From positions 310,001-374,000 of the forward strand of contig VJWM01000126.1 of assembly GCA_010909165.1 (NCBI GenBank): a DNA stretch of 64,000 nt, given 5' to 3'. The notes beneath the pieces were generated by a model. The model did no database searches. It had not been told where the DNA came from and saw only the letters and a program-made list of their open reading frames with translations. The translations under genes and the position numbers were made by a program. Source of the DNA: Anthoceros angustus (taxonomy: Eukaryota > Plantae > Anthocerotophyta). This document shows, in pieces, positions 1 to 17,857 of this stretch (positions are counted from its first letter, which is position 1; every line of letters begins with the position of its first letter).

Positions 1-14
1 TCCCCAAAGCCAGG

Positions 15-3000
15 ATGATGAGGATGCCAAACTCACCAAATGGATATGTAACACCTTCTTCTGTGAAAACTTTCTCCATAGAGGCCTTTATGGTGTTTGT
101 GAACGATTTGCAAGAAACAGATCTACTGATAGAGTGGTTGGTGCAAGAGGAGAAGGATGACAACGCTATCATAGGGCTGGACTGTGAGCATGACCCTGAT
201 GGTGCACTCAGACTCATACAGTTATCTGTTCACAGTCGATGTCTGCTTATTCGCATACCTTGCTTGACATCTAGGCACCTGTTCCAAGCTCCTATCAGGT
301 ACACAATGGGGACATGTTCTGCCAGGTTCCATGTTGGATTAGGTTGCTGCAAATGACGTACCTACTTCTGGAAGTGGCTTGCAGGCTCTCAAGACTCCTT
401 GCATCTGTAACGTACATCAAAACTGGAGCGGAAGTCCACAAGGATGCCCTGGCTATCTTCCACACCCTGGGACTTGTGGTCAATGGATGCAAGAACGTAT
501 CCCATGTGTATCGTAGTAACAATCTTACGAGTAGCATGTCAAAGATATTCAGGTGAGCAGCTAGCTTGTCGAGTACTTTCTCATTTTTCCCTGAATCCCC
601 GCACGGTCACGTTGGGATGTAGAAAAGGGCAATCTCTGTCAAGTTTCTGCATATTGCTCTGTCCTGGACTTCAATGTTACGAGGAGAGGGACATTGAATA
701 AACCTAACACAGCTTGAGGCAGGGACTTGTATGGCTGGGACTGGAAAAAGGAAAAGTCTGTAAGCTGCAGTCGTTGGGGCAGTGACTACCTATCACTAGA
801 ACAGGTTTGTCCCAAGAACCTGGTGACCTGGTTTGGGCTCAAAGGGGTGGTCTACGTTAGCAAAAGCAACCTGCATGGGGCTGCTGCAACCGGTACTGGA
901 TTAACTAGTGGAAAGTGCCTTGTCCAGATAAAGTACGCAGTCATTGATGCCTGGGCATCTCGCATGATATCACTTGAAGGAAGAGCTTCAGAGGAGGGTG
1001 CCATTCCTTTGGTATCCTTGCAAGATGTTCCCATGGAGGTGCTCGACATTTTTACAAGATCAATATCACACTCTGATGCTCTTAAGAAGGAAGAAACAGT
1101 AATCGAGGTCAGAGGGCAACATATTTTACTGGAAAGCATAACAGCATCAAGAAGTTTTTATCTGCTAGGCTTTCAGCTCCCTTCTGATTTAATCTATCAG
1201 AATTTGCTTGCTCAACACTCCTGCCAACTGTCTGCATGTGAGAATCCTCATACCCATGACTGAGGTGCTTGTGTGTAAACTGTGCATATCAGGGGGAGGG
1301 AAATATCATGGCGATTAGCTGTGGGACACTCCGACTGCAACAAACTAAGTTCCGGTCTAGAGTTCTTGGGATAAAGTCTTCAGTTGAGATTAATTTTAAA
1401 GATGGCCAGGAACCAGAAAAATATGCTGCCACAGCACGGACAGGGAAGACAGTCACCTTGCACCGAATATCAACTTCAGCACCTACTTCTGAAGCTGACA
1501 CAAAAAAATCAGGTACATGTCATTGAAACAAGCATTTTTACCTGCCTCGATGTTACAAGGGTGATAATACTAACAGTGGTTTACACGTTCACCCAGCAGG
1601 ACAGTTCCTGGATGTTGCTTCAATCAGCAGCATTGTTATCGACAACCGAAAACACGCTAACATGCAGAAAAAGAAATTGGACGAAGCTCTTTATGGCGTA
1701 CTTTGTGCACCAGCGAAGTGCCCAGCCCTCTTACTCCGTGCACTACAGTGTAGTAACATCCAGGCAGACAACGTCGTGCCCAATGAATGGCCCTCGAGGT
1801 TGATGGCACTACAGTACATCTCTGGTGCTCTGAACAACTCTCAATGTAAGGCTTGGGAACAGATCTTGACATCTCATGTCTCAGCTACTATTGGCCCACC
1901 AGGGACCGGAAAAACAAGGCTCATTGCAGCAGTCACCAAAGCATGGGATGAATTAGCGGATGAGGGGCAGGTTTTACTTTGCACCGCTTACCAAAATGTG
2001 GCAACCCGCCATATTGCAGAAACACTTGTTCGGCAACAGGTATATTTCTACTCTGTCTCCTTAGTCAGTCCAGTCAATATCCAAGTGGGACTTGCTTCTT
2101 CTTGTTGAAATAGTCGCGAAGGTTTGAAACAGCGCTGAAAGGTTGACCTTCCACTGCTGTGATGTTTGTGCTAATCTGGTGGCTTCACATTTGCTGAAGG
2201 TACCCGGAGTCATGCTGCTGATCAGCCAAGACTACTACATGGAATGGCATGAACATCTTTACAAGGACATCAAAAAATCTGTTATCATGTCAGCAGCCGG
2301 AAGTGATCTGCTTTCCTCTCTGCATGTTTGGGCAGTCACGAACAAGCGGAAAACTCCGCGGATCCTTATTTGCACCCTCAGCATGGTGGGTTCCCAAGCC
2401 TTCAATACAAGTCTCATGAGCGGAAAAGTGACCATGATGCTTGTCGACGAGTGTTCACAAGCTGCAGAAGGCAGCATTTTGGCACCTCTGGCATGTCTGC
2501 CCAACTTGCAACAAGTTGGAGTTTTGGGAGACCCCTACCAACTGCCACCATTTAGTGGGAGGCAAACCCAAGCAAACAGCGTGTATGACTTGATGGCCAT
2601 GGGCTGCATCCCAACCTTACTGGAGGAGCAATATCGAATGCCTCCTGCTATCTGCGAGTTCATATCATGCGAATTCTACAAGAAGAAACTGAAGACAGCA
2701 CCTATTCGCGAGAGACAGAAAGGAATCAGAACCCCACTTTTGTGGGTGAATGTGAAGGGGTATACTACTGTTCTACCTGGGAAAACCTCCTTGACCAACA
2801 AGGCAGAAGCAAATGCCATTATTACATTCTGCAAAAGCTACTCTACGATCTCAGCTGGAGACATGGATACAAAGGAGCCCAGAGAACTTCCGACCAACCC
2901 AGAGAGCCAAGAAGCAGGGAACAGGAGTCTGGTAGTGCTCACTCTCTACGAAGACCAGCGCCAGCTCATCTCCAGCCTCATGCGTGAGTCGAACCTAGAG

Positions 3001-3321
3001 TTCCAGGTCCACAACGTGGACTCGTTCCAAGGCCAAGAGGCGGAAACTGTCCTAATCTCCCTGGTGGTTGCTGACAAGATGTCATACTTTGCAGCAGATC
3101 CAAATCGGGCCTGCGTGATACTGTCACGAGCAAGCAAGCTGATGTGCATATTCGGGGACCTGAACAAAGTGATAGACAACCCAAGAGCAGAAGTCTGGAG
3201 GAGGCTCGCATTACACTGTCAGCATCGTGACTACATTCTTCAAGAGAATAACATACAGGCGGTTGTAGAGGAAAAAGAAACAACGAGCAGCTTGAAAAGC
3301 AAGACTTGCTCTCTCACGTGA
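15..3321 (+). CDS. Multi-exon DEDDy (WRN/MUT-7-like) 3'-5' exonuclease fused to a Upf1/DNA2/NAM7-like SF1 helicase
   Basis: Exonuclease motifs are ExoI IIGLDCE (ORF 15..356), ExoII KTGAEVHKDA (314..556) and ExoIII W..LSLEQ/IKYAVIDAW (727..1263, split by an intron at ~806-927). Helicase motifs are Walker A IGPPGTGKT, Ia TAYQNVAT, Walker B VDECSQ, III GDPYQLPP, QYRM, V VDSFQGQE and VI NRACVILSRA. All are on one strand with GT-AG gaps. The 5' end may lie outside the window. Confidence 0.85.
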
Positions 3322-4084
3322 GCCATACAGAACCCTATGGGCCACAGGCCGAGAGCCCATGAGTACCCTAATAAAGGAAGCAAATCTGTTTAGACAGAAC
3401 GCCTAGACTCCTGAATTTTGCTTACCTGCTACTTGCAATCTCTCCTGGTGGAAAACTCCGAGAAGCACAAGGAAGCAACCATAGCTGCCATGTACTGAAC
3501 ACCCTTTGTACAGCATTACATGCTTGGGCCCCGCACCTGACCACTTCACACCCTGCCAAACTCTAAAACATGCAGCGAGACCCTGAGCAAGCTGCTTGGA
3601 GCTGATGGAGGTGATGTTGTGCTGTGAAACACAGAGCAGCAGATCTGCCTGCTGAAGGAAACTGGAAATCATACCGGACTTTTTCACCAATCTGCACGTG
3701 GGGGATCTACTGTATGTACCATATTCTTGAACCAGGCCCTCCATGAGTTCCTGACCCGCAGCAGAATTTCAGCCTGCCGGCACACCATTTCCGCATTTCG
3801 CCTGCCAGCCTTCCGGGACGATCACCGACCTGCAAACGTATGGCCATTCTGACTTGTGTTGTGAACTTCCAACTTTCCTTCTGGGCTTGAAACTCACCGT
3901 AGCGATGTGTTGGGTGAATGCTTCAAAGGTATCGTGGTGTCTGTGAAGGTGCTGACCGCGTGTTGCCTTATCTCTTGCCCCGTTTCAGGGTGATGGGTAC
4001 AGGTGTTGCAGGCTGCGTTGGTAACAGTAACAGCAGCAGGAGAGTGAGGGGATAGTGTTGCCGGATGTGACTTTTGTTCCACTG

Positions 4085-7000
4085 ATGCTGCCGGACGCTG
4101 CCAGGGGGAGCTTCAAACACACGCGGATTGACGGAAGGCTACGGTCGGCACAGGCTGTTGCGAACTGGCCTGGGCCTAGCCGAATAGGGGAGCAGGGCAA
4201 GCGAGTGTCTAGTCCCGGTAACTGTTTGGCTGCTGCGCAATGCCATGTTCTGGTTGGTGAGTCTGCAGTTGAGGGATTTCTCATTTGTAGCTGTCGTGCA
4301 GAGGAGCCAGGGGCACAGCCGGCATTGTGGGAGAAGTTTCTGGACGGATTTGCGCGGTGGTGGGAGAGTAGGTCGAATAAGGTAGCTGTGTTAGCAATTG
4401 TTGTGTTTGTATCCAGATGAGCTGTAGTACTGGTGTACTGGAGGAGTCGTAGCTAAGCTGTTGATGTGGCTACAATGCAGATTTGCAAGTGGACGGGGGA
4501 CCAACTACGGGAGCCTTCGAGGGTTGACTCACAACATGCATGGCAGGATGGGAGGCTACCAACATCACAATCTGTTAGTGCATTCAGACCTTCCTACCAG
4601 CCTGAAGTAATCCCGGACGCAGATCGTAGCAACTTGTTGAGGTGCAGACTCCAGCTGTTTTGATTGAATTTGTTGCTCGGGTCCTCCAAAGCTGTGGTGC
4701 CCACAATTGTTTTCCTGATCATGATAGACTTTGCAGGGCGGTCGCGGACGAGACTCCTCCAGGCGTAGGAGCCTGGTTCGATGTGTATGGGGAGGGAGAG
4801 CTCACTGAGGCTGTTGATGCTTTGGACTCCGTGGTGCAGCAAGGGTCCTATGTTCCCACTGCTCTCTTTTATGGTGTACTCAAGAGGGGTGTGGCAGAGA
4901 AGGATCTGGTTGTGGGCAAGCTTGTCCACTCTCTTACCCTTGCCACGGGGTACGAGTCAAGCACATTTTTAGCTAACCATATCATCCGCATGTATGCCTC
5001 TCATGGAAGATTGCTGGAAGCAACCAAGCTATTCAGCAACTTGGATAGTCCGGATATCTTTGCGTGGTGCTTCATCATCTTGGCACACGTTGAACAAGGT
5101 CAGCCTACTAGGGCTATAGAGCTGTATAAGCGTATGCGGAAATTATCTGTGAAACCAGACAGTCATACGTATGTGGCAGTTCTTAAAGCCTGTGCCAGTG
5201 CTTTGGATCTGGCATCTGGCAAGCAGGTCCATTCTGATATTCTGAGTGGTGAATTGCAGCCAAGTGTCTTCGTTGGCAACTGCCTGGTGGACATGTATGT
5301 GAAATGTGGCAGCCTAGAAGATGCCCGAAGAGTGTTTGACAATCTGCTATCCAAGAATGTGGTTACATGGACTGCTATCATTGCAGGATATGCCCAGCAA
5401 GGGCTTGGTGAAGAAGCCCTTTCCTTGTATGCAAGTATGCAGCAGGAAGGCATCAATACAGCAGACCGTGTTACTTATGTGTGTCTCTTGACAGCATGTG
5501 CCAGCATTGGAGCTTTACATCAAGGGAAGTGGTTTCATGAAATGATCAAGGAGAAAGGACTTGAAGCTGATGTGGTGATTGGCAGCAGCCTGGTAGACAT
5601 GTATGCCAAGTGTGGAAGCTTAGAAGATGCCTGCAGCGTCTTTGAGAAACTGCCAACCAAAAATCTGGTGACATGGACAGCTATCATATCGGGGTATGTG
5701 CAGCATGGTCATGGTCTAGAAGCCCTTGATCTGTATGCAAGTATGCAACGGGAGGGCATGCTTTTAGCGGACCGTGTTACATTTGCAGGCTTAGTGAAGG
5801 CATGTGCAAGCATTGGTGCTTTAAATACAGGCAAGGAGCTTCATCTCCAGATTCAGAAGGGCAGGCTAGATGGTGACGTTCTTGTTGGCAATAGCCTGGT
5901 GGATATGTATGCAAAATGTGGGAGCTTAGAAGATGCAGGGAGGGTGTTCAACAATCTGCAGTCGAAGGATGTGGCAACATGGACTGCAATGATTGCAGGG
6001 TATGCTCAGCATGGGCTTTGCCACGAAGCCCTTTCTCTGTATGCTAGGATGCAAAAGGATGGTATTGGTCCAGCCAATCATGTAACATATGTGTGCCTTC
6101 TCAATGCATGTGCAAGGGTTGGAGCCCTTCCTCAGGGGAAGCAGTTGCATTCTCAGATTCAGGATAGAGGTCTTGAAGCTGATGTGGTGGTTGGCAGCAG
6201 CCTCGTGGACATGTATGCCAAATGTGGGAGCTTACTGGATGCCCGCAGGGTCTTTGACAGACTGCCAACCCGAAATGTTGTGACGTGGAATTCCATGCTT
6301 GCAGGATATGCCCAGCAGGGGCTTGGCGAAGAAGCGCTCGCTCTTTACTCTAGAATGCAGGAGGAGGGCATTACTCCAGCTGGCCATGGAACCTATGTGT
6401 GCGTCTTGAAAGCATGTGCCAGCATTGGAGCACTGCATCAGGGAAAGCAACTGCATTCTGAGATTCAAGAGAAAGGGCTGGAAGTTGATGTGGTCATTGG
6501 CAACTGCCTGGTGGACATGTATACAAAATGTGGGAGTTTACCTGATGCTCGCAAGGTATTTGATGGGCTGCCGAAGAAAGATGTGGTGAGCTGGACCACC
6601 TTGCTAAATGGGTATACACAACATAATGACAGCCAGATGGCAATGCAGTGTTTCCAGGAGATGCAGCAGCATGGGGTGGAGCCAAATGACGCTACTTTTT
6701 TGTGTCTCCTGACAGCATTCAGTCATCAGGCAATGGTTTCTGAAGGCCGGCAGTACTTCAAGATGATGATGGAGCAATATGCAATTGCGCCAACAGTTTT
6801 CCACTATGCAGCCATGGTTGACTTGCTTGGAAGGTCAGGCTTCCTTGAGGAGGCAGAAGATATGCTAAAGAGGATGCCATTCAAAGACGACATTGTGGGG
6901 TGGATGACATTGCTATGTGCCTGTAGGACCCAAGGTGACACACAGCGGGGCGAGCGGTGTTTCAACCGACTTACTGAAATGGAACCTCAAAATGCTGCAC

Positions 7001-7497
7001 CATATGCGCTCATGTCAAACATCTATGAAAATGCGAGTAGGTGGAATGATGTAGGTAGAATACAAAGCCTGAGGATATCTGCAGGTGCTTGCAAGAAGCC
7101 TGCAAGGGCTTGGATTGAGGTAGGCAGCAAAGTCCATACATTCACTGTTGGGGAAGAGAGGGATGACATATCCTCTAGGTTAAAGAGTGCCAACCTTGGC
7201 TTCGAGGAGGACAGAGAGCAAGAGCTACCTGACGAGTTGCTGCTGAAGCCATTGTCACAGAGAGATAAAGGTGATGCTCTGTGTGGACATGCTGAGAAGC
7301 TCGCATTAGCGTATGGTCTGCTCAACACTTCCCATGGCACACCTTTGCTAGTTACCAAAAATCTTAGGATGTGCCAGGACTGCCACAATGGCACCAAAGT
7401 ATTGTCGAGGATTGAAAATCGGGAGATCATCGTGAGGGATGCACATTGTGTCCACCACTTTGTGGACGGGTTCTGTTCATGCGGAGATGTACATTGA
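4085..7497 (+). CDS. PLS-class PPR protein with E1/E2 and DYW:KP deaminase domain (ends CSCGDVH); candidate organellar U-to-C editing factor
   Basis: ORF 4642..7497 has PLS triplets with an exact 306-nt period (MY.KCG ATGs at 5293, 5599, 5905, 6211, 6517), KKPARAWIEV in place of the PG box, HAEKLA and CQDCH. Inferred 5' exons are ~4085-4381 and 4481-4641, with the main exon from 4738. The start codon is tentative. Confidence 0.92.
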
Positions 7498-13445: not shown

Positions 13446-15184
13446 CTAGGCCCTAGGCTCAAAAAGTTCTGTTGCTTGCGAAGAGTTGGAAGCGGAGTTG
13501 GACACATCTAGATATTTCCGGAAGCTGGCCGCAGTCGTCCAGTGTTCACTCTCCAAATCATCATCTTGATAGAAAGCCTCAGCTCTCAGATCAGATGCGC
13601 CCCCTGTGTTCAGCATCTTCACTACTTGTGCCATTGACGGTCTTCTATCCCTTGTGAGTGCCAGACAAGCCACGGCCACCTACAGGCATTCGCAGAAGGT
13701 GAGTGCTCATTGTTGTATGATAAAAGAAGTGTAAAGAGCGGTTCATTTTAGAAGCAAGGCCAACAAAACTGAAAACCTTTGCGACTCCTTCGATGCTCTC
13801 GAAGTCCTCGGGAGTCAGGCCGTCATGCAGAGTGCGATCAATGATCTCCCGAACTCGGTTCTCCTTGATCAAAGGGACACAAAGTTCACTGACGTGGGTG
13901 GGCTCCGATGAAGCGTTGTCCACAGGTTTCTGTGCAGTTATCAGCTCCAGCAGCACCACCCCGAAGCTGAAGACATCTGTTTTGTCTGTGAGCTGCATGT
14001 TTCGAAAGTACTCGGGATCAAGGTAGCCGAGAGTACCCATCACTGCAGTGGAAACGTGGGTCCTCTCTGCCTCTACCAATCTTGAAATGCCAAAATCTGC
14101 AACCTTGGCATTGAAGCTGCCATCCAGCAAAATGTTTGCCGACTTCACATCCCGGTGGAAAATGGGAGGCCTGGCCAACACGTGCAGATACTTGAGGGCC
14201 TCGGCAGTCTGGATAGCAATATTCAGCCTCCTGGTCCAGTCCAGCTCAGTGATTTGGCCCTGACGAGCTTGCTCCAGGTGGCCTTGTAGGGTGCCGTTGG
14301 AGATGAACTCGTACACCAACAGGGGGACCTCCATCTCAACACAGCAGCCCAGAAGCCGGACCAGATTGCTGTGGTTCAATTGGGACAGAATGGAAACTTC
14401 GTTCAGGAACTGGTCCAGGTCCTGGGTTCCAGCATTCTTGGATTTCTTGATGGCCACCACCCTGCCGTCGTCAAGACATCCCTTGTACACCGTGCCGAAT
14501 CCCCCGCTTCCAAGCTCGGTATGGGCAGAAAAATTTTCTGTTGCCTTCTGCAACGCTCGGTACTGGAAGAAAGTACAACGAGAGCCCCAAGTTGCCATGA
14601 GTGTCTTAAGGTACCCGGGATGCACGGGATTGCTATACCGCACGGGATTGGGAATTGGCTGCACCCCGGGCACTGCAGGTGCGGAGATGTGAAGGCCAAA
14701 GTCTGACACCCGCATGTTTTTGAGAGGCTTGTACCGTCCGCAAAGATAGCAGAGTACTAGGACCTTAACCAGAAGAGCGACAACAATCAAGCTCGCAATG
14801 ACGAGTATAAGTCCTGCAGAAGCCAGCGAAGGATCATGCAAGATCAGTCAACATGCTACCTAGGGGCTTGCAGCTAATGCCCGGCTAGTGTTGAGCCTCA
14901 AGATGCCTACCTATAGGAATGTTGCCGGATGATCCTGGGTCCTCTGCATTGATCATCAGACATGTCATCAGAACACCTTCAACTCTGAACTTCAATGACT
15001 GCACATCAAGACCTTCCAGAATCTTGAGCGACCAGACCTGCCAGGACAGAATCAAGTCCTGCCAGGAGAGCATCTTACGTGCTGAGAAGTCTTGTGCAAG
15101 GCACTTGGATTGAAACCAGAAGAGGACTGGAATCCACCACATCCAGGAACTGAGCAGCGGATGCCCCATTGCTGCCCTGCCCAT
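13446..15184 (-). CDS. WAK-like receptor kinase 1 (signal peptide, ~60-aa ectodomain, TM, RD kinase)
   Basis: Exon 1 15184-14911 (MWWIPVLFWFQSKCLAQ signal). Intron 14910-14814 joins in frame to the TM LILVIASLIIVVALLV. Kinase motifs GSGGFG, VAIKK, HRDVKSANILL, DFG, GYLDPEY. Intron 13776-13680, last exon 13679-13446. Confidence 0.88.
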
Positions 15185-16250: not shown

Positions 16251-17857
16251 CTAAGCCCTAGGCCCAGAAAGTTCTATTGCTTGTAGAGAGCCGGAAACAG
16301 AGCTCGACAATTTCAGATATTTCCGGAAGCTGGCAGCAGTTGGCAAGTGTTCACCCTCCAAACCATCACTTTGATAGAAAGCATCAGCGCTCAAATCAGA
16401 TGCGCTCACTTTGTTCAGTTTCTCCAATACTTGTGTCATTGACGGTCTTCTATCTCTTGTGAGTGCTAGACAAGCCACAGCCACCTGCTGGTATTTGCAG
16501 AAGGTGAGTGCTCATTGTTGTATGATCAAAGATGTACAGAAGCTGCTCATTTTTAAAAAGCAGGGCCAACAAACTACAAACCTTTGCGACTCTTTCGATG
16601 CTCTCGAAGTCCTCTGGAGTCAGGCTGTCATACAGAGTGCGGTCAATGATCTCCTGAACTCTGTTCTCCCTGATCAAAGGGACACAGACCTCACTGAGGT
16701 GGGTGGCCTGCGATGAAGAGCTGTCCACAGGTTTCTGTGCAGTTATCAGCTCCAGCAGCACCACGCCGAAGCTGAAGACATCTGTCTTGTCTGTGAGCTG
16801 CATGTTCCGAAAGTATTCAGGATCAAGGTACCCGGGAGTGCCCTTCACTGCAGTGGAAACATGGGTCTTATCTACCTCTACCAATCTGGAAAGGCCAAAA
16901 TCTGCAACCTTGGCATTGAAGCTGCCATCTAGCAGAATGTTGGCCGACTTCACATCCCGGTGGAAAATGGGAGGATTGGCCTTGACGTGCAGGTATTCCA
17001 GCGCCTCTGCAGTCTGGATAGCAATCTTAAGCCTTATGCTCCAGTCCAGCTCAGTAGGTTGGCCCTGACGAGCTTGCTCCAGGTGGTCTTGCAGGGTGCC
17101 GTTGGAGATGAACTCGTACACCAACAGGGGGACCTGCATATCCACACAACATCCCAGAAGCCGGACCAGATTTTTGTGGTTCACCTGGGACAGAATGGCA
17201 ACTTCATTCACAAACTGTTCCACGTCCTGAGCTCCCCCATGCTTGGATTTCTTGATGGCTACCAGAGCTCCATTAAGAGATCCCTTATACACCGTGCCAA
17301 ATCCTCCGATCCCTATCTGCGCATACGGAGAGAAATTCTGTGTTGCGTTCTCCAGCTCTTGGTAGTCGAAGAAAGTACATCGAGCACCCCCGCTTGCTTT
17401 CAATTTTTTGAGAACTCCTGAGTAACCAGGCATGCTCCGCCCATCGGGATCAGCAATGGGCTTCGATTGTTTGGACCGCTTGCCCCTTATGTAAACACAC
17501 GAGACTCCTAGGATGGAAGCAACAATCACGAACACAAAGGGAATGATGATGGCTGCAGGCAGAGGAGCGAACAAGGATGTACATTAGCTCACATTTCTGC
17601 CTCGGCAATCACCTATCAAATTGATGCTTAAGAGTTGAAAGCTCCAGCTCACATCCAGCAGCCAGATATAGCGTGTAGTGTTGGCTACCTTCAAGAGGAA
17701 TTGTGACATTCTTTGTCCCTGAGGGTAGTATGGGAGCTCCTGCAGCTGGCACTAGGGTTGATGGCGGCTGTGCTGGACTTTGGCCTGGGCAAGTGAAAGG
17801 AAAGCAGAGCAGGACTGGAATCCATAGCATCCAGGAAGCGAGCATTCGATTGCCCAT
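16251..17857 (-). CDS. WAK-like receptor kinase 2, tandem paralogue of kinase 1; apparent frameshift in the signal/ectodomain exon
   Basis: Kinase ORF 16450..17574 plus last exon 16251..16484, with the same intron position as kinase 1. The upstream exon MGNRMLASWMLWIPVLLCF is homologous to the kinase 1 signal exon. Its donor (ata g|gtgatt, ~17613) is in a different frame from the ATG. Confidence 0.8.

Follow-up and report, generated by a model that had tools for sequence, protein, structure and literature searches.

The window analyzed here, a stretch of 64,000 nucleotides from the genome of the hornwort Anthoceros angustus (assembly GCA_010909165.1, contig VJWM01000126.1, positions 310,001 to 374,000), opens on its plus strand with the tail of a giant nuclear gene. 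This tail encodes a predicted DEDDy 3'-5' exonuclease followed by an Upf1-like helicase of superfamily 1B (SF1B), and we lean towards the view, derived from sequence comparison, that its product is an unwind-and-degrade surveillance enzyme for which RNA would be the more likely substrate.

Positions 3 to 3321 can be read as seven exons with GT-AG borders (Table 1) which join in frame into 836 codons and a stop, without any internal stop or frameshift. The six introns measure 84 to 185 nucleotides each and all run from GT to AG, while the exon lengths total 2511 nucleotides, a multiple of three. Exon borders were placed from the reading frame, the GT-AG signals and homology, and searches were run for each exon singly or through homologues found in databases. 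Exon 1 runs off the start of the window with its frame open from base 3. The ATG at position 15 was rejected as start codon since the frame stays open back to base 3 and the residues upstream of the ATG align to relatives, the four preceding codons matching the conserved 'IPK..M..MP' block of the family; judged by this alignment, the apparent start is an artefact of the window edge. An acceptor of exon 2 at 343 was likewise rejected, as it would give a 44-nucleotide intron and a 14-residue insertion that is absent from relatives. The acceptor at 385 is preferred because the loop length then equals that of the liverwort protein and the intron becomes 86 nucleotides long. The acceptor of exon 6 is of the NAGNAG type (CAGCAG, 1595-1600), with starts at 1597 or 1600 that are both in frame and differ by one residue.

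That the exonuclease and helicase blocks are one coding unit, namely the seven 3'-terminal exons of one very large nuclear gene, is concluded from several lines of comparison: the junctions are in phase, the gaps are intron-sized, the introns are shared with a relative, one further relative reads through part of them and others carry both halves in single open reading frames (ORFs). In detail, contig L001 (Logan SRR33208241), which stems from another bryophyte species, contains all seven exon blocks in the same order with 49-69% amino-acid identity, and its six splice junctions coincide in codon position with those of the window. In contig L002, from a third species, exons 5, 6 and 7 form one unbroken ORF, and therefore the junctions between them are read through exactly as predicted. 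The fern contigs L004 and L005, which are transcript-like with untranslated flanks, contain a complete ORF of 1088 amino acids with the Pfam domains PF01612, AAA_11 and AAA_12, and a Trinity transcript from EukProt likewise shows one ORF across exonuclease and helicase. The annotated proteins of Ceratopteris, Adiantum and Calypogeia have the same domain order within a single protein, and the annotated Ceratopteris isoforms vary only by N-terminal truncation, none of them consisting of the exonuclease only.

One might instead suppose that two adjoining genes, a WEX-like exonuclease and a separate SF1 helicase arranged head to tail, only look fused. The gene structure in A. angustus is known from genomic sequence alone, a point that also counts against our own reading, and among the Ceratopteris models there are isoforms with a shortened N-terminus, the smallest of 708 amino acids, that start inside the exonuclease domain. 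Such an arrangement is nevertheless hardly credible: the short gaps with their GT-AG ends and matching phases leave no room for a terminator and a promoter, the linker exons 4 and 5 are kept at 62-64% identity with L001, both halves lie in single ORFs on the fern contigs and the EukProt transcript, and the same domain order recurs from a glaucophyte to the ferns. As a separate observation, intron positions vary among bryophytes, L002 having no introns in exons 5-7 and a further bryophyte contig, L003, having an intron inside the Walker A codons which is absent from the window.

Exons 1 to 4 encode a DEDDy 3'-5' exonuclease of the WRN/EXD2 type, which is predicted from its residues to be catalytically intact. 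When the window's exons were aligned as separate fragments with 23 exonuclease domains of the family, GLDCEH, HKDALA and YAVIDAW came to lie on the catalytic columns D-x-E, D and Y-x3-D, and all five catalytic residues of a DEDDy exonuclease are present. By way of a fern homologue, these motif positions correspond to D-x-E, D and Y-x3-D of human EXD2 (6k17) and the WRN exonuclease (2fbt). The original prediction, made from this DNA alone, had proposed three DEDDy motifs (GLDCE, HKDA and YAVIDA) with apparently intact acidic residues directly upstream of a helicase on the same strand, and their location in the catalytic columns at the positions listed in Table 1 bears this out.

Independent support for the domain comes from a family hidden Markov model (HMM) that was built from fern, liverwort and metagenome homologues with the window sequence excluded. 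It matches four fragments of the window, which are collinear and follow each other back to back (HMM positions 27-116, 113-180, 180-208 and 205-274, with the E-values given for exons 1 to 4 in Table 1), and no further match was found on either strand of the 64 kb. Together with the motifs, this places the finding well outside chance. Orthologues pass the gathering cut-off of PF01612 (DNA_pol_A_exo1; 23.6 bits), with 37.6-38.7 bits in Calypogeia and 53.6 bits in the short form of Ceratopteris. Exon 1 of L001, used as query against PDB sequences, gave no match; for the exonuclease region of a fern family member, sequence matches were obtained to human EXD2 (6k17, E 1.3e-9), the WRN exonuclease and NrnC. 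A fold comparison with Foldseek, made on the AlphaFold model of a fern homologue only, one without the motif I residues and with block-mean pLDDT (predicted local distance difference test) values of 41-89, mostly 60-89, over residues 240-480, matched an RNase H-like alpha/beta fold, with EXD2 (E 2.5e-7), the WRN exonuclease (2fbt, TM 0.65), NrnC, Nibbler and RNase D among the hits. In the model of the fern short form, the first 239 residues are disordered.

The helicase encoded by exons 6 and 7 is a complete and, as far as its motifs allow this to be judged, apparently competent member of the Upf1-like SF1B group. Pfam AAA_11 is matched with its first part in exon 6 (2e-9, 38.1 bits) and its last part in exon 7 (4e-10, 40.3 bits), and AAA_12 in exon 7 (4.3e-30, 105.2 bits), to be compared with a gathering cut-off of 27. 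The set of helicase motifs is complete (I, Ia, II, III, IV, V and VI) and does not vary among the closest relatives in the family alignment; the complete SF1 helicase of the original prediction is thus confirmed both by domain scores and by motifs. Exon 7 alone, searched against PDB, matches Upf1/Nam7 (1e-15), Sen1 (6e-14) and ZNFX1 (2e-9), and also a fungal 5'-3' RNA helicase-like protein, human UPF1 and IGHMBP2. The PADLOC helicase models of Mokosh MkoA match it at 2e-35, and the NCBIfam model of the IGHMBP2 family matches a fern homologue at 1e-35. The linker domain of exon 5 probably forms a barrel of the 1B type as in Upf1-like helicases, and strands are present at the equivalent residues 513-600 in the AlphaFold model of the fern homologue.

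The coding sequence in the window is, as concluded from its relatives, the last third (836 residues) of a protein of about 3000 residues. It is collinear with residues 2159-2986 of the 2994-amino-acid Ceratopteris protein KAH7281971.1 (P0272), and the full 12 kb of L001 can be aligned with that protein over residues 350 to 2985. The original prediction of a single polypeptide therefore holds insofar as nuclease and SF1 helicase belong to one coding unit; it does not hold for a stand-alone two-domain enzyme, as these are, by the same comparison, the C-terminal 836 residues of something much larger. Upstream of the exonuclease and within the same protein, the orthologues have a DEAH/RHA-type SF2 helicase, about 1200 residues without assigned function and a DUF3854/TOPRIM-like region. 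In L001 this upstream part comprises motifs V-VI of a DEAH/RHA helicase, a segment resembling HA2, a TOPRIM-looking segment and several long ORFs that have no family match. The 3343-amino-acid protein of the liverwort Calypogeia fissa comprises DEAD (224-394), Helicase_C (485-610), PF01612 (2547-2673) and AAA_11/AAA_12 (2919-3298), and the best PDB matches of its N-terminal helicase are Spindle-E (6e-56), DHX36, DHX29 and MLE.

Pfam, NCBIfam HMM and PDB sequence searches of the homologues' region just before the exonuclease gave no match. In an embedding search, DUF3854 and Toprim_2 clusters were nearest to this region (score 0.96; 176-178 shared features), and the TOPRIM motifs E-G-x-x-K-A and D-A-x can be read in it by eye; the region is called TOPRIM-like on the strength of this search and these motifs. 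For mobile ORFs described in the plastome of the fern Mankyua (PMC6220310), the best matches are cyanobacterial DUF3854 and primase proteins; the TOPRIM-like region resembles that domain family.

To define the family, a profile search of 1.8 billion representatives was carried out with exon 7 and its three nearest homologues as query. It returned a small and sharply separated family, whose non-query members scored between 1e-119 and 1e-69 with the next match at 1e-50. In the fern members, PF01612 lies N-terminal to AAA_11/AAA_12 with E-values down to 3e-14. Long forms occur in three ferns (including Ceratopteris KAH7281971.1 and Adiantum GOP47_0030144) and in one liverwort (Calypogeia, 3343 amino acids). 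Short forms of about 1000-1170 amino acids, consisting of exonuclease and SF1B helicase, were found in ferns only, in two paralogue groups. In a tree of the exon 7 region the window falls inside a land-plant clade (98/98) and, with L001 as its sister, inside a bryophyte clade (97/98) together with L002, L003 and Calypogeia. Because the tree follows the plant groups and introns are conserved, we conclude that the family is an old host gene and not a mobile element.

No search recovered a seed-plant protein near the family, and none of the protein collections searched contained the protein encoded by this gene; since the A. angustus genome itself is absent from these, their coverage of mosses, lycophytes and hornworts is uncertain. 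Outside the land plants, an exonuclease-like domain can be detected at the N-terminus of many of the SF1 helicases that come next in similarity, among them ones from a glaucophyte, volvocine algae (Volvox, Tetrabaena, Pleodorina, Edaphochlamys), chytrids, basidiomycetes and Neolecta as well as metagenome proteins. Named database entries of the family bear only 'hypothetical', 'unnamed' or automatic names. The original prediction had described the architecture as unfamiliar from flowering plants. This stands insofar as the searches made found no seed-plant member, but the module itself is already present, as hypothetical proteins, in fern, liverwort, volvocine, glaucophyte and fungal proteomes.

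Some of these distant carriers have peculiarities of their own. Of the Edaphochlamys debaryana proteins P0125 and P0148 (locus tags HYH03_012079 and HYH03_012074), the one with 2096 amino acids contains two modules of exonuclease-like domain and SF1 helicase in tandem, and its paralogue of 939 amino acids is encoded only a few genes further along that contig. The arrangement may reflect either clustering of local genes or a gene model in which genes were merged. A metagenome contig (ERZ27280270) encodes at L006:3866-6661 a 931-amino-acid protein of exonuclease and SF1 helicase with intact pentad. This 12-kb contig otherwise carries short ORFs on mixed strands, which are mostly unannotated, with weak SprT-like and DNA-methylase matches. 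Viral contigs were searched for relatives of the metagenomic exonuclease-helicase P0137 and none were found.

If the domains behave as their families do, the SF1B motor would use ATP to move 5' to 3' on one strand of a nucleic acid, either duplex or structured. The complementary strand would be freed with its 3' end first and degraded 3' to 5' by the attached DEDDy exonuclease, so that unwinding and destruction would be coupled in one polypeptide, with one strand being tracked and the other eaten. In the long form, the N-terminal DEAH/RHA motor could run 3' to 5' on the opposite strand and hence in the same direction, giving a two-motor helicase-nuclease. The likeliest job of such an enzyme would be the removal of aberrant or foreign nucleic acid, with aberrant, transposon or viral RNA favoured because both helicases fall in clades dominated by RNA helicases. 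A role on DNA is kept alive by the kinship of the nuclease to EXD2 and WRN and by the plasmid-replicase flavour of the TOPRIM-like domain. The RNA-surveillance or antiviral role put forward in the original prediction is plausible, with DNA as a further candidate substrate in view of the primase-like domain.

Several points weigh against the proposed reading of gene and enzyme. A Pfam scan of the exonuclease exons taken singly gave no match, and the 5' two-thirds of the gene, being outside the window, are seen only in relatives. Substrate, polarity and coupling are predictions from what is known of the families. The TOPRIM-like region resembles plasmid replicase/primase domains, which points to DNA. 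Finally, the catalytic pentad is degenerate in every sampled fern paralogue and in the four fungi that can be aligned at motif I, with the helicase being kept; because these ferns and fungi lost the catalytic residues and retained the helicase, it is concluded from the alignment that nuclease activity is dispensable in some lineages.

This last point leads to the suggestion that the exonuclease domain binds without cutting, as EXD1 and Egalitarian do, or that the locus is decaying, and that no unwind-and-degrade activity exists. All three fern paralogue groups and the alignable fungal relatives have indeed replaced motif I and often motif III residues, and the inactive DEDDy domains of Exd1 and Egalitarian are likewise among the Foldseek matches. 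For the window this suggestion has little probability in our view: its five catalytic residues are present, as they are in L001, the liverwort, the glaucophyte, most alignable volvocine sequences and all but one of the metagenome proteins, and its 836 codons are free of stops and frameshifts. The fern copies P0273, P0290-P0300, P0121, P0122, P0272, P0302 and P0303, whether short or long, have lost the D-x-E of motif I (V-C-K, L-C-R and similar). Motif III has in addition lost its Y, its D or both in the long forms and in one of the short groups of ferns, and helicase motifs are kept in all. The fern domain thus looks like a preserved pseudo-nuclease, and the module of exonuclease and SF1B helicase is old, was probably active ancestrally and was disarmed more than once.

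A less likely, yet real, possibility is that the whole protein is directed at DNA, either in replication restart, repair or end processing, or as a domesticated plasmid or virus replication module. The TOPRIM-like domain would then prime or nick DNA, the helicases would unwind DNA and the DEDDy domain would trim DNA 3' ends like WRN and EXD2. DUF3854/Toprim_2 clusters are the nearest neighbours of the region just upstream of the exonuclease in the orthologues, and, to judge from titles, DUF3854 is a mark of the Rep proteins of cyanobacterial plasmids. DNA can be unwound by Upf1-like helicases as well. The solved exonucleases most closely related to the domain, EXD2 and WRN, have DNA as their substrate (PMC6648332). 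However, Pfam detected no polymerase domain in the long forms, the TOPRIM region escapes Pfam, the NCBIfam HMMs and PDB sequence search, both helicases belong to the RNA-dominated clades mentioned above, and the host-following tree and conserved introns mark an old host gene. We therefore prefer the surveillance enzyme with RNA as its more likely substrate. In a bolder version of it, the full protein would be a single-chain two-motor helicase-nuclease with a TOPRIM-type domain that recognises and destroys foreign double-stranded or structured RNA or RNA:DNA hybrids as a eukaryotic, RecBCD-like RNA immunity, and its exonuclease-SF1B core would be an ancient eukaryotic defence or silencing module that was disarmed independently in ferns and fungi. 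This version is unlikely.

The surroundings of the gene in the window are ordinary plant nuclear DNA with a PPR-DYW gene and two tandem kinase ORFs (Table 1), another PPR gene and a gene for an RRM protein. The PPR-E-DYW ORF ends in D-V-H in place of the usual D-Y-W. The tandem kinase ORFs are probably a local duplication.

Table 1. Coordinates within the window of the exons, helicase motifs and neighbouring features (percentages are amino-acid identities; HMM, family hidden Markov model of the exonuclease domain)
Feature	Position	Strand	Content and evidence
Exon 1 (partial, as seen in the window)	1..298	+	N-terminal part of DEDDy exonuclease; motif I GLDCEH 174-191; donor GT at 299; 66% to L001, E 7e-38 (tblastn); HMM E 4e-29
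Exon 2	385..552	+	Exonuclease motif II HKDALA 437-454; 69% to L001; HMM E 2e-16
Exon 3	723..804	+	Helix preceding motif III, conserved W-x-W...S-x-W block; 54% to L001, E 1e-6; HMM E 3e-8
Exon 4	928..1107	+	Exonuclease motif III YAVIDAW 934-954 and start of linker; 64% to L001; HMM E 1e-14
Exon 5	1293..1512	+	Beta-rich linker domain; GTLRLQQ block 1323-1343; 62% to L001, 48% to L002
Exon 6	1597..2039	+	Stalk helices and first part of RecA1; Walker A GPPGTGKT 1893-1916; motif Ia 1980-2003; AAA_11 2e-9; 57% to L001
Exon 7	2200..3321	+	Remainder of SF1B helicase; stop TGA 3319-3321; 49% to L001
Helicase motif II (exon 7)	2443-2460	+	DECSQ; direct reading
Helicase motif III (exon 7)	2527-2550	+	GDPYQLPP; direct reading
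Helicase motif IV (exon 7)	2629-2646	+	QYRMPP; direct reading
Helicase motif V (exon 7)	3016-3042	+	Direct reading
Helicase motif VI (exon 7)	3118-3132	+	Direct reading
AATAAA, candidate poly(A) signal	3370..3375	+	49 nucleotides past the stop; read directly
Intronless PPR-E-DYW editing-factor ORF	4642-7497	+	PPR_2 3e-103, DYW_deaminase 2.5e-30
Protein-kinase ORF, first of tandem	13645-14841	-	Pkinase ~1e-46
Protein-kinase ORF, second of tandem	16450-17574	-	Pkinase ~1e-46

Quality control of genomes and RNA depends centrally on fusions of helicase and nuclease such as WRN, Dna2, HELZ2 and RecBCD. The DEDDy-SF1B module, which is widespread but patchy in eukaryotes and apparently lost in seed plants, is a candidate surveillance module, for RNA or DNA, of early land plants, and it offers a natural series of active nucleases in bryophytes and algae versus disarmed ones in ferns and fungi. 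Literature searches for a DEDDy-SF1B fusion found no paper.

Among known systems, WRN and plant WEX contain a DEDDy 3'-5' exonuclease of the same fold, and in WRN it is also combined with a helicase in one polypeptide. Plant WEX is not known to have a helicase. The WRN helicase, however, is of the RecQ type (SF2, 3'-5'), whereas the adjoining helicase in the window is an Upf1-like SF1B enzyme, and no match to RecQ, RQC or HRDC was found by Pfam in the window exons or the orthologues. Dna2 combines an SF1B helicase with a PD-(D/E)XK nuclease. EXD2 (PMC6648332) is the closest solved relative of the exonuclease by sequence and fold and has the same D-E-D-Y-D pentad, but it is a stand-alone, membrane-anchored protein without helicase domains. 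Conversely, Upf1, Sen1, IGHMBP2, ZNFX1, MOV10-SDE3 and the bacterial Mokosh MkoA share AAA_11 and AAA_12 with all seven motifs, yet the window's family forms a clade of its own and none of those named families is known to have an N-terminal DEDDy domain. In the profile search, land-plant members scored above 1e-105 among themselves and below 1e-50 against all other sequences.

The nearest working analogy is the interferon-induced human HELZ2 (PMC10516660), which joins Upf1-like SF1 helicase domains and a 3'-5' exonuclease in one protein. Its nuclease is, however, of the RNB (RNase II/R) type, a domain for which Pfam gave no match in the orthologues, and it has neither a DEAH helicase nor a TOPRIM-like region, so that this is an analogy and not an architectural homology. 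RecBCD and AddAB offer a further parallel: judged by the polarities of the families, the long form as a unit would join a 3'-5' DEAH/RHA motor, a 5'-3' SF1B motor and a nuclease, as RecB and RecD do together, although it would do so with other helicase families and another nuclease fold, in one polypeptide and in a eukaryotic host.

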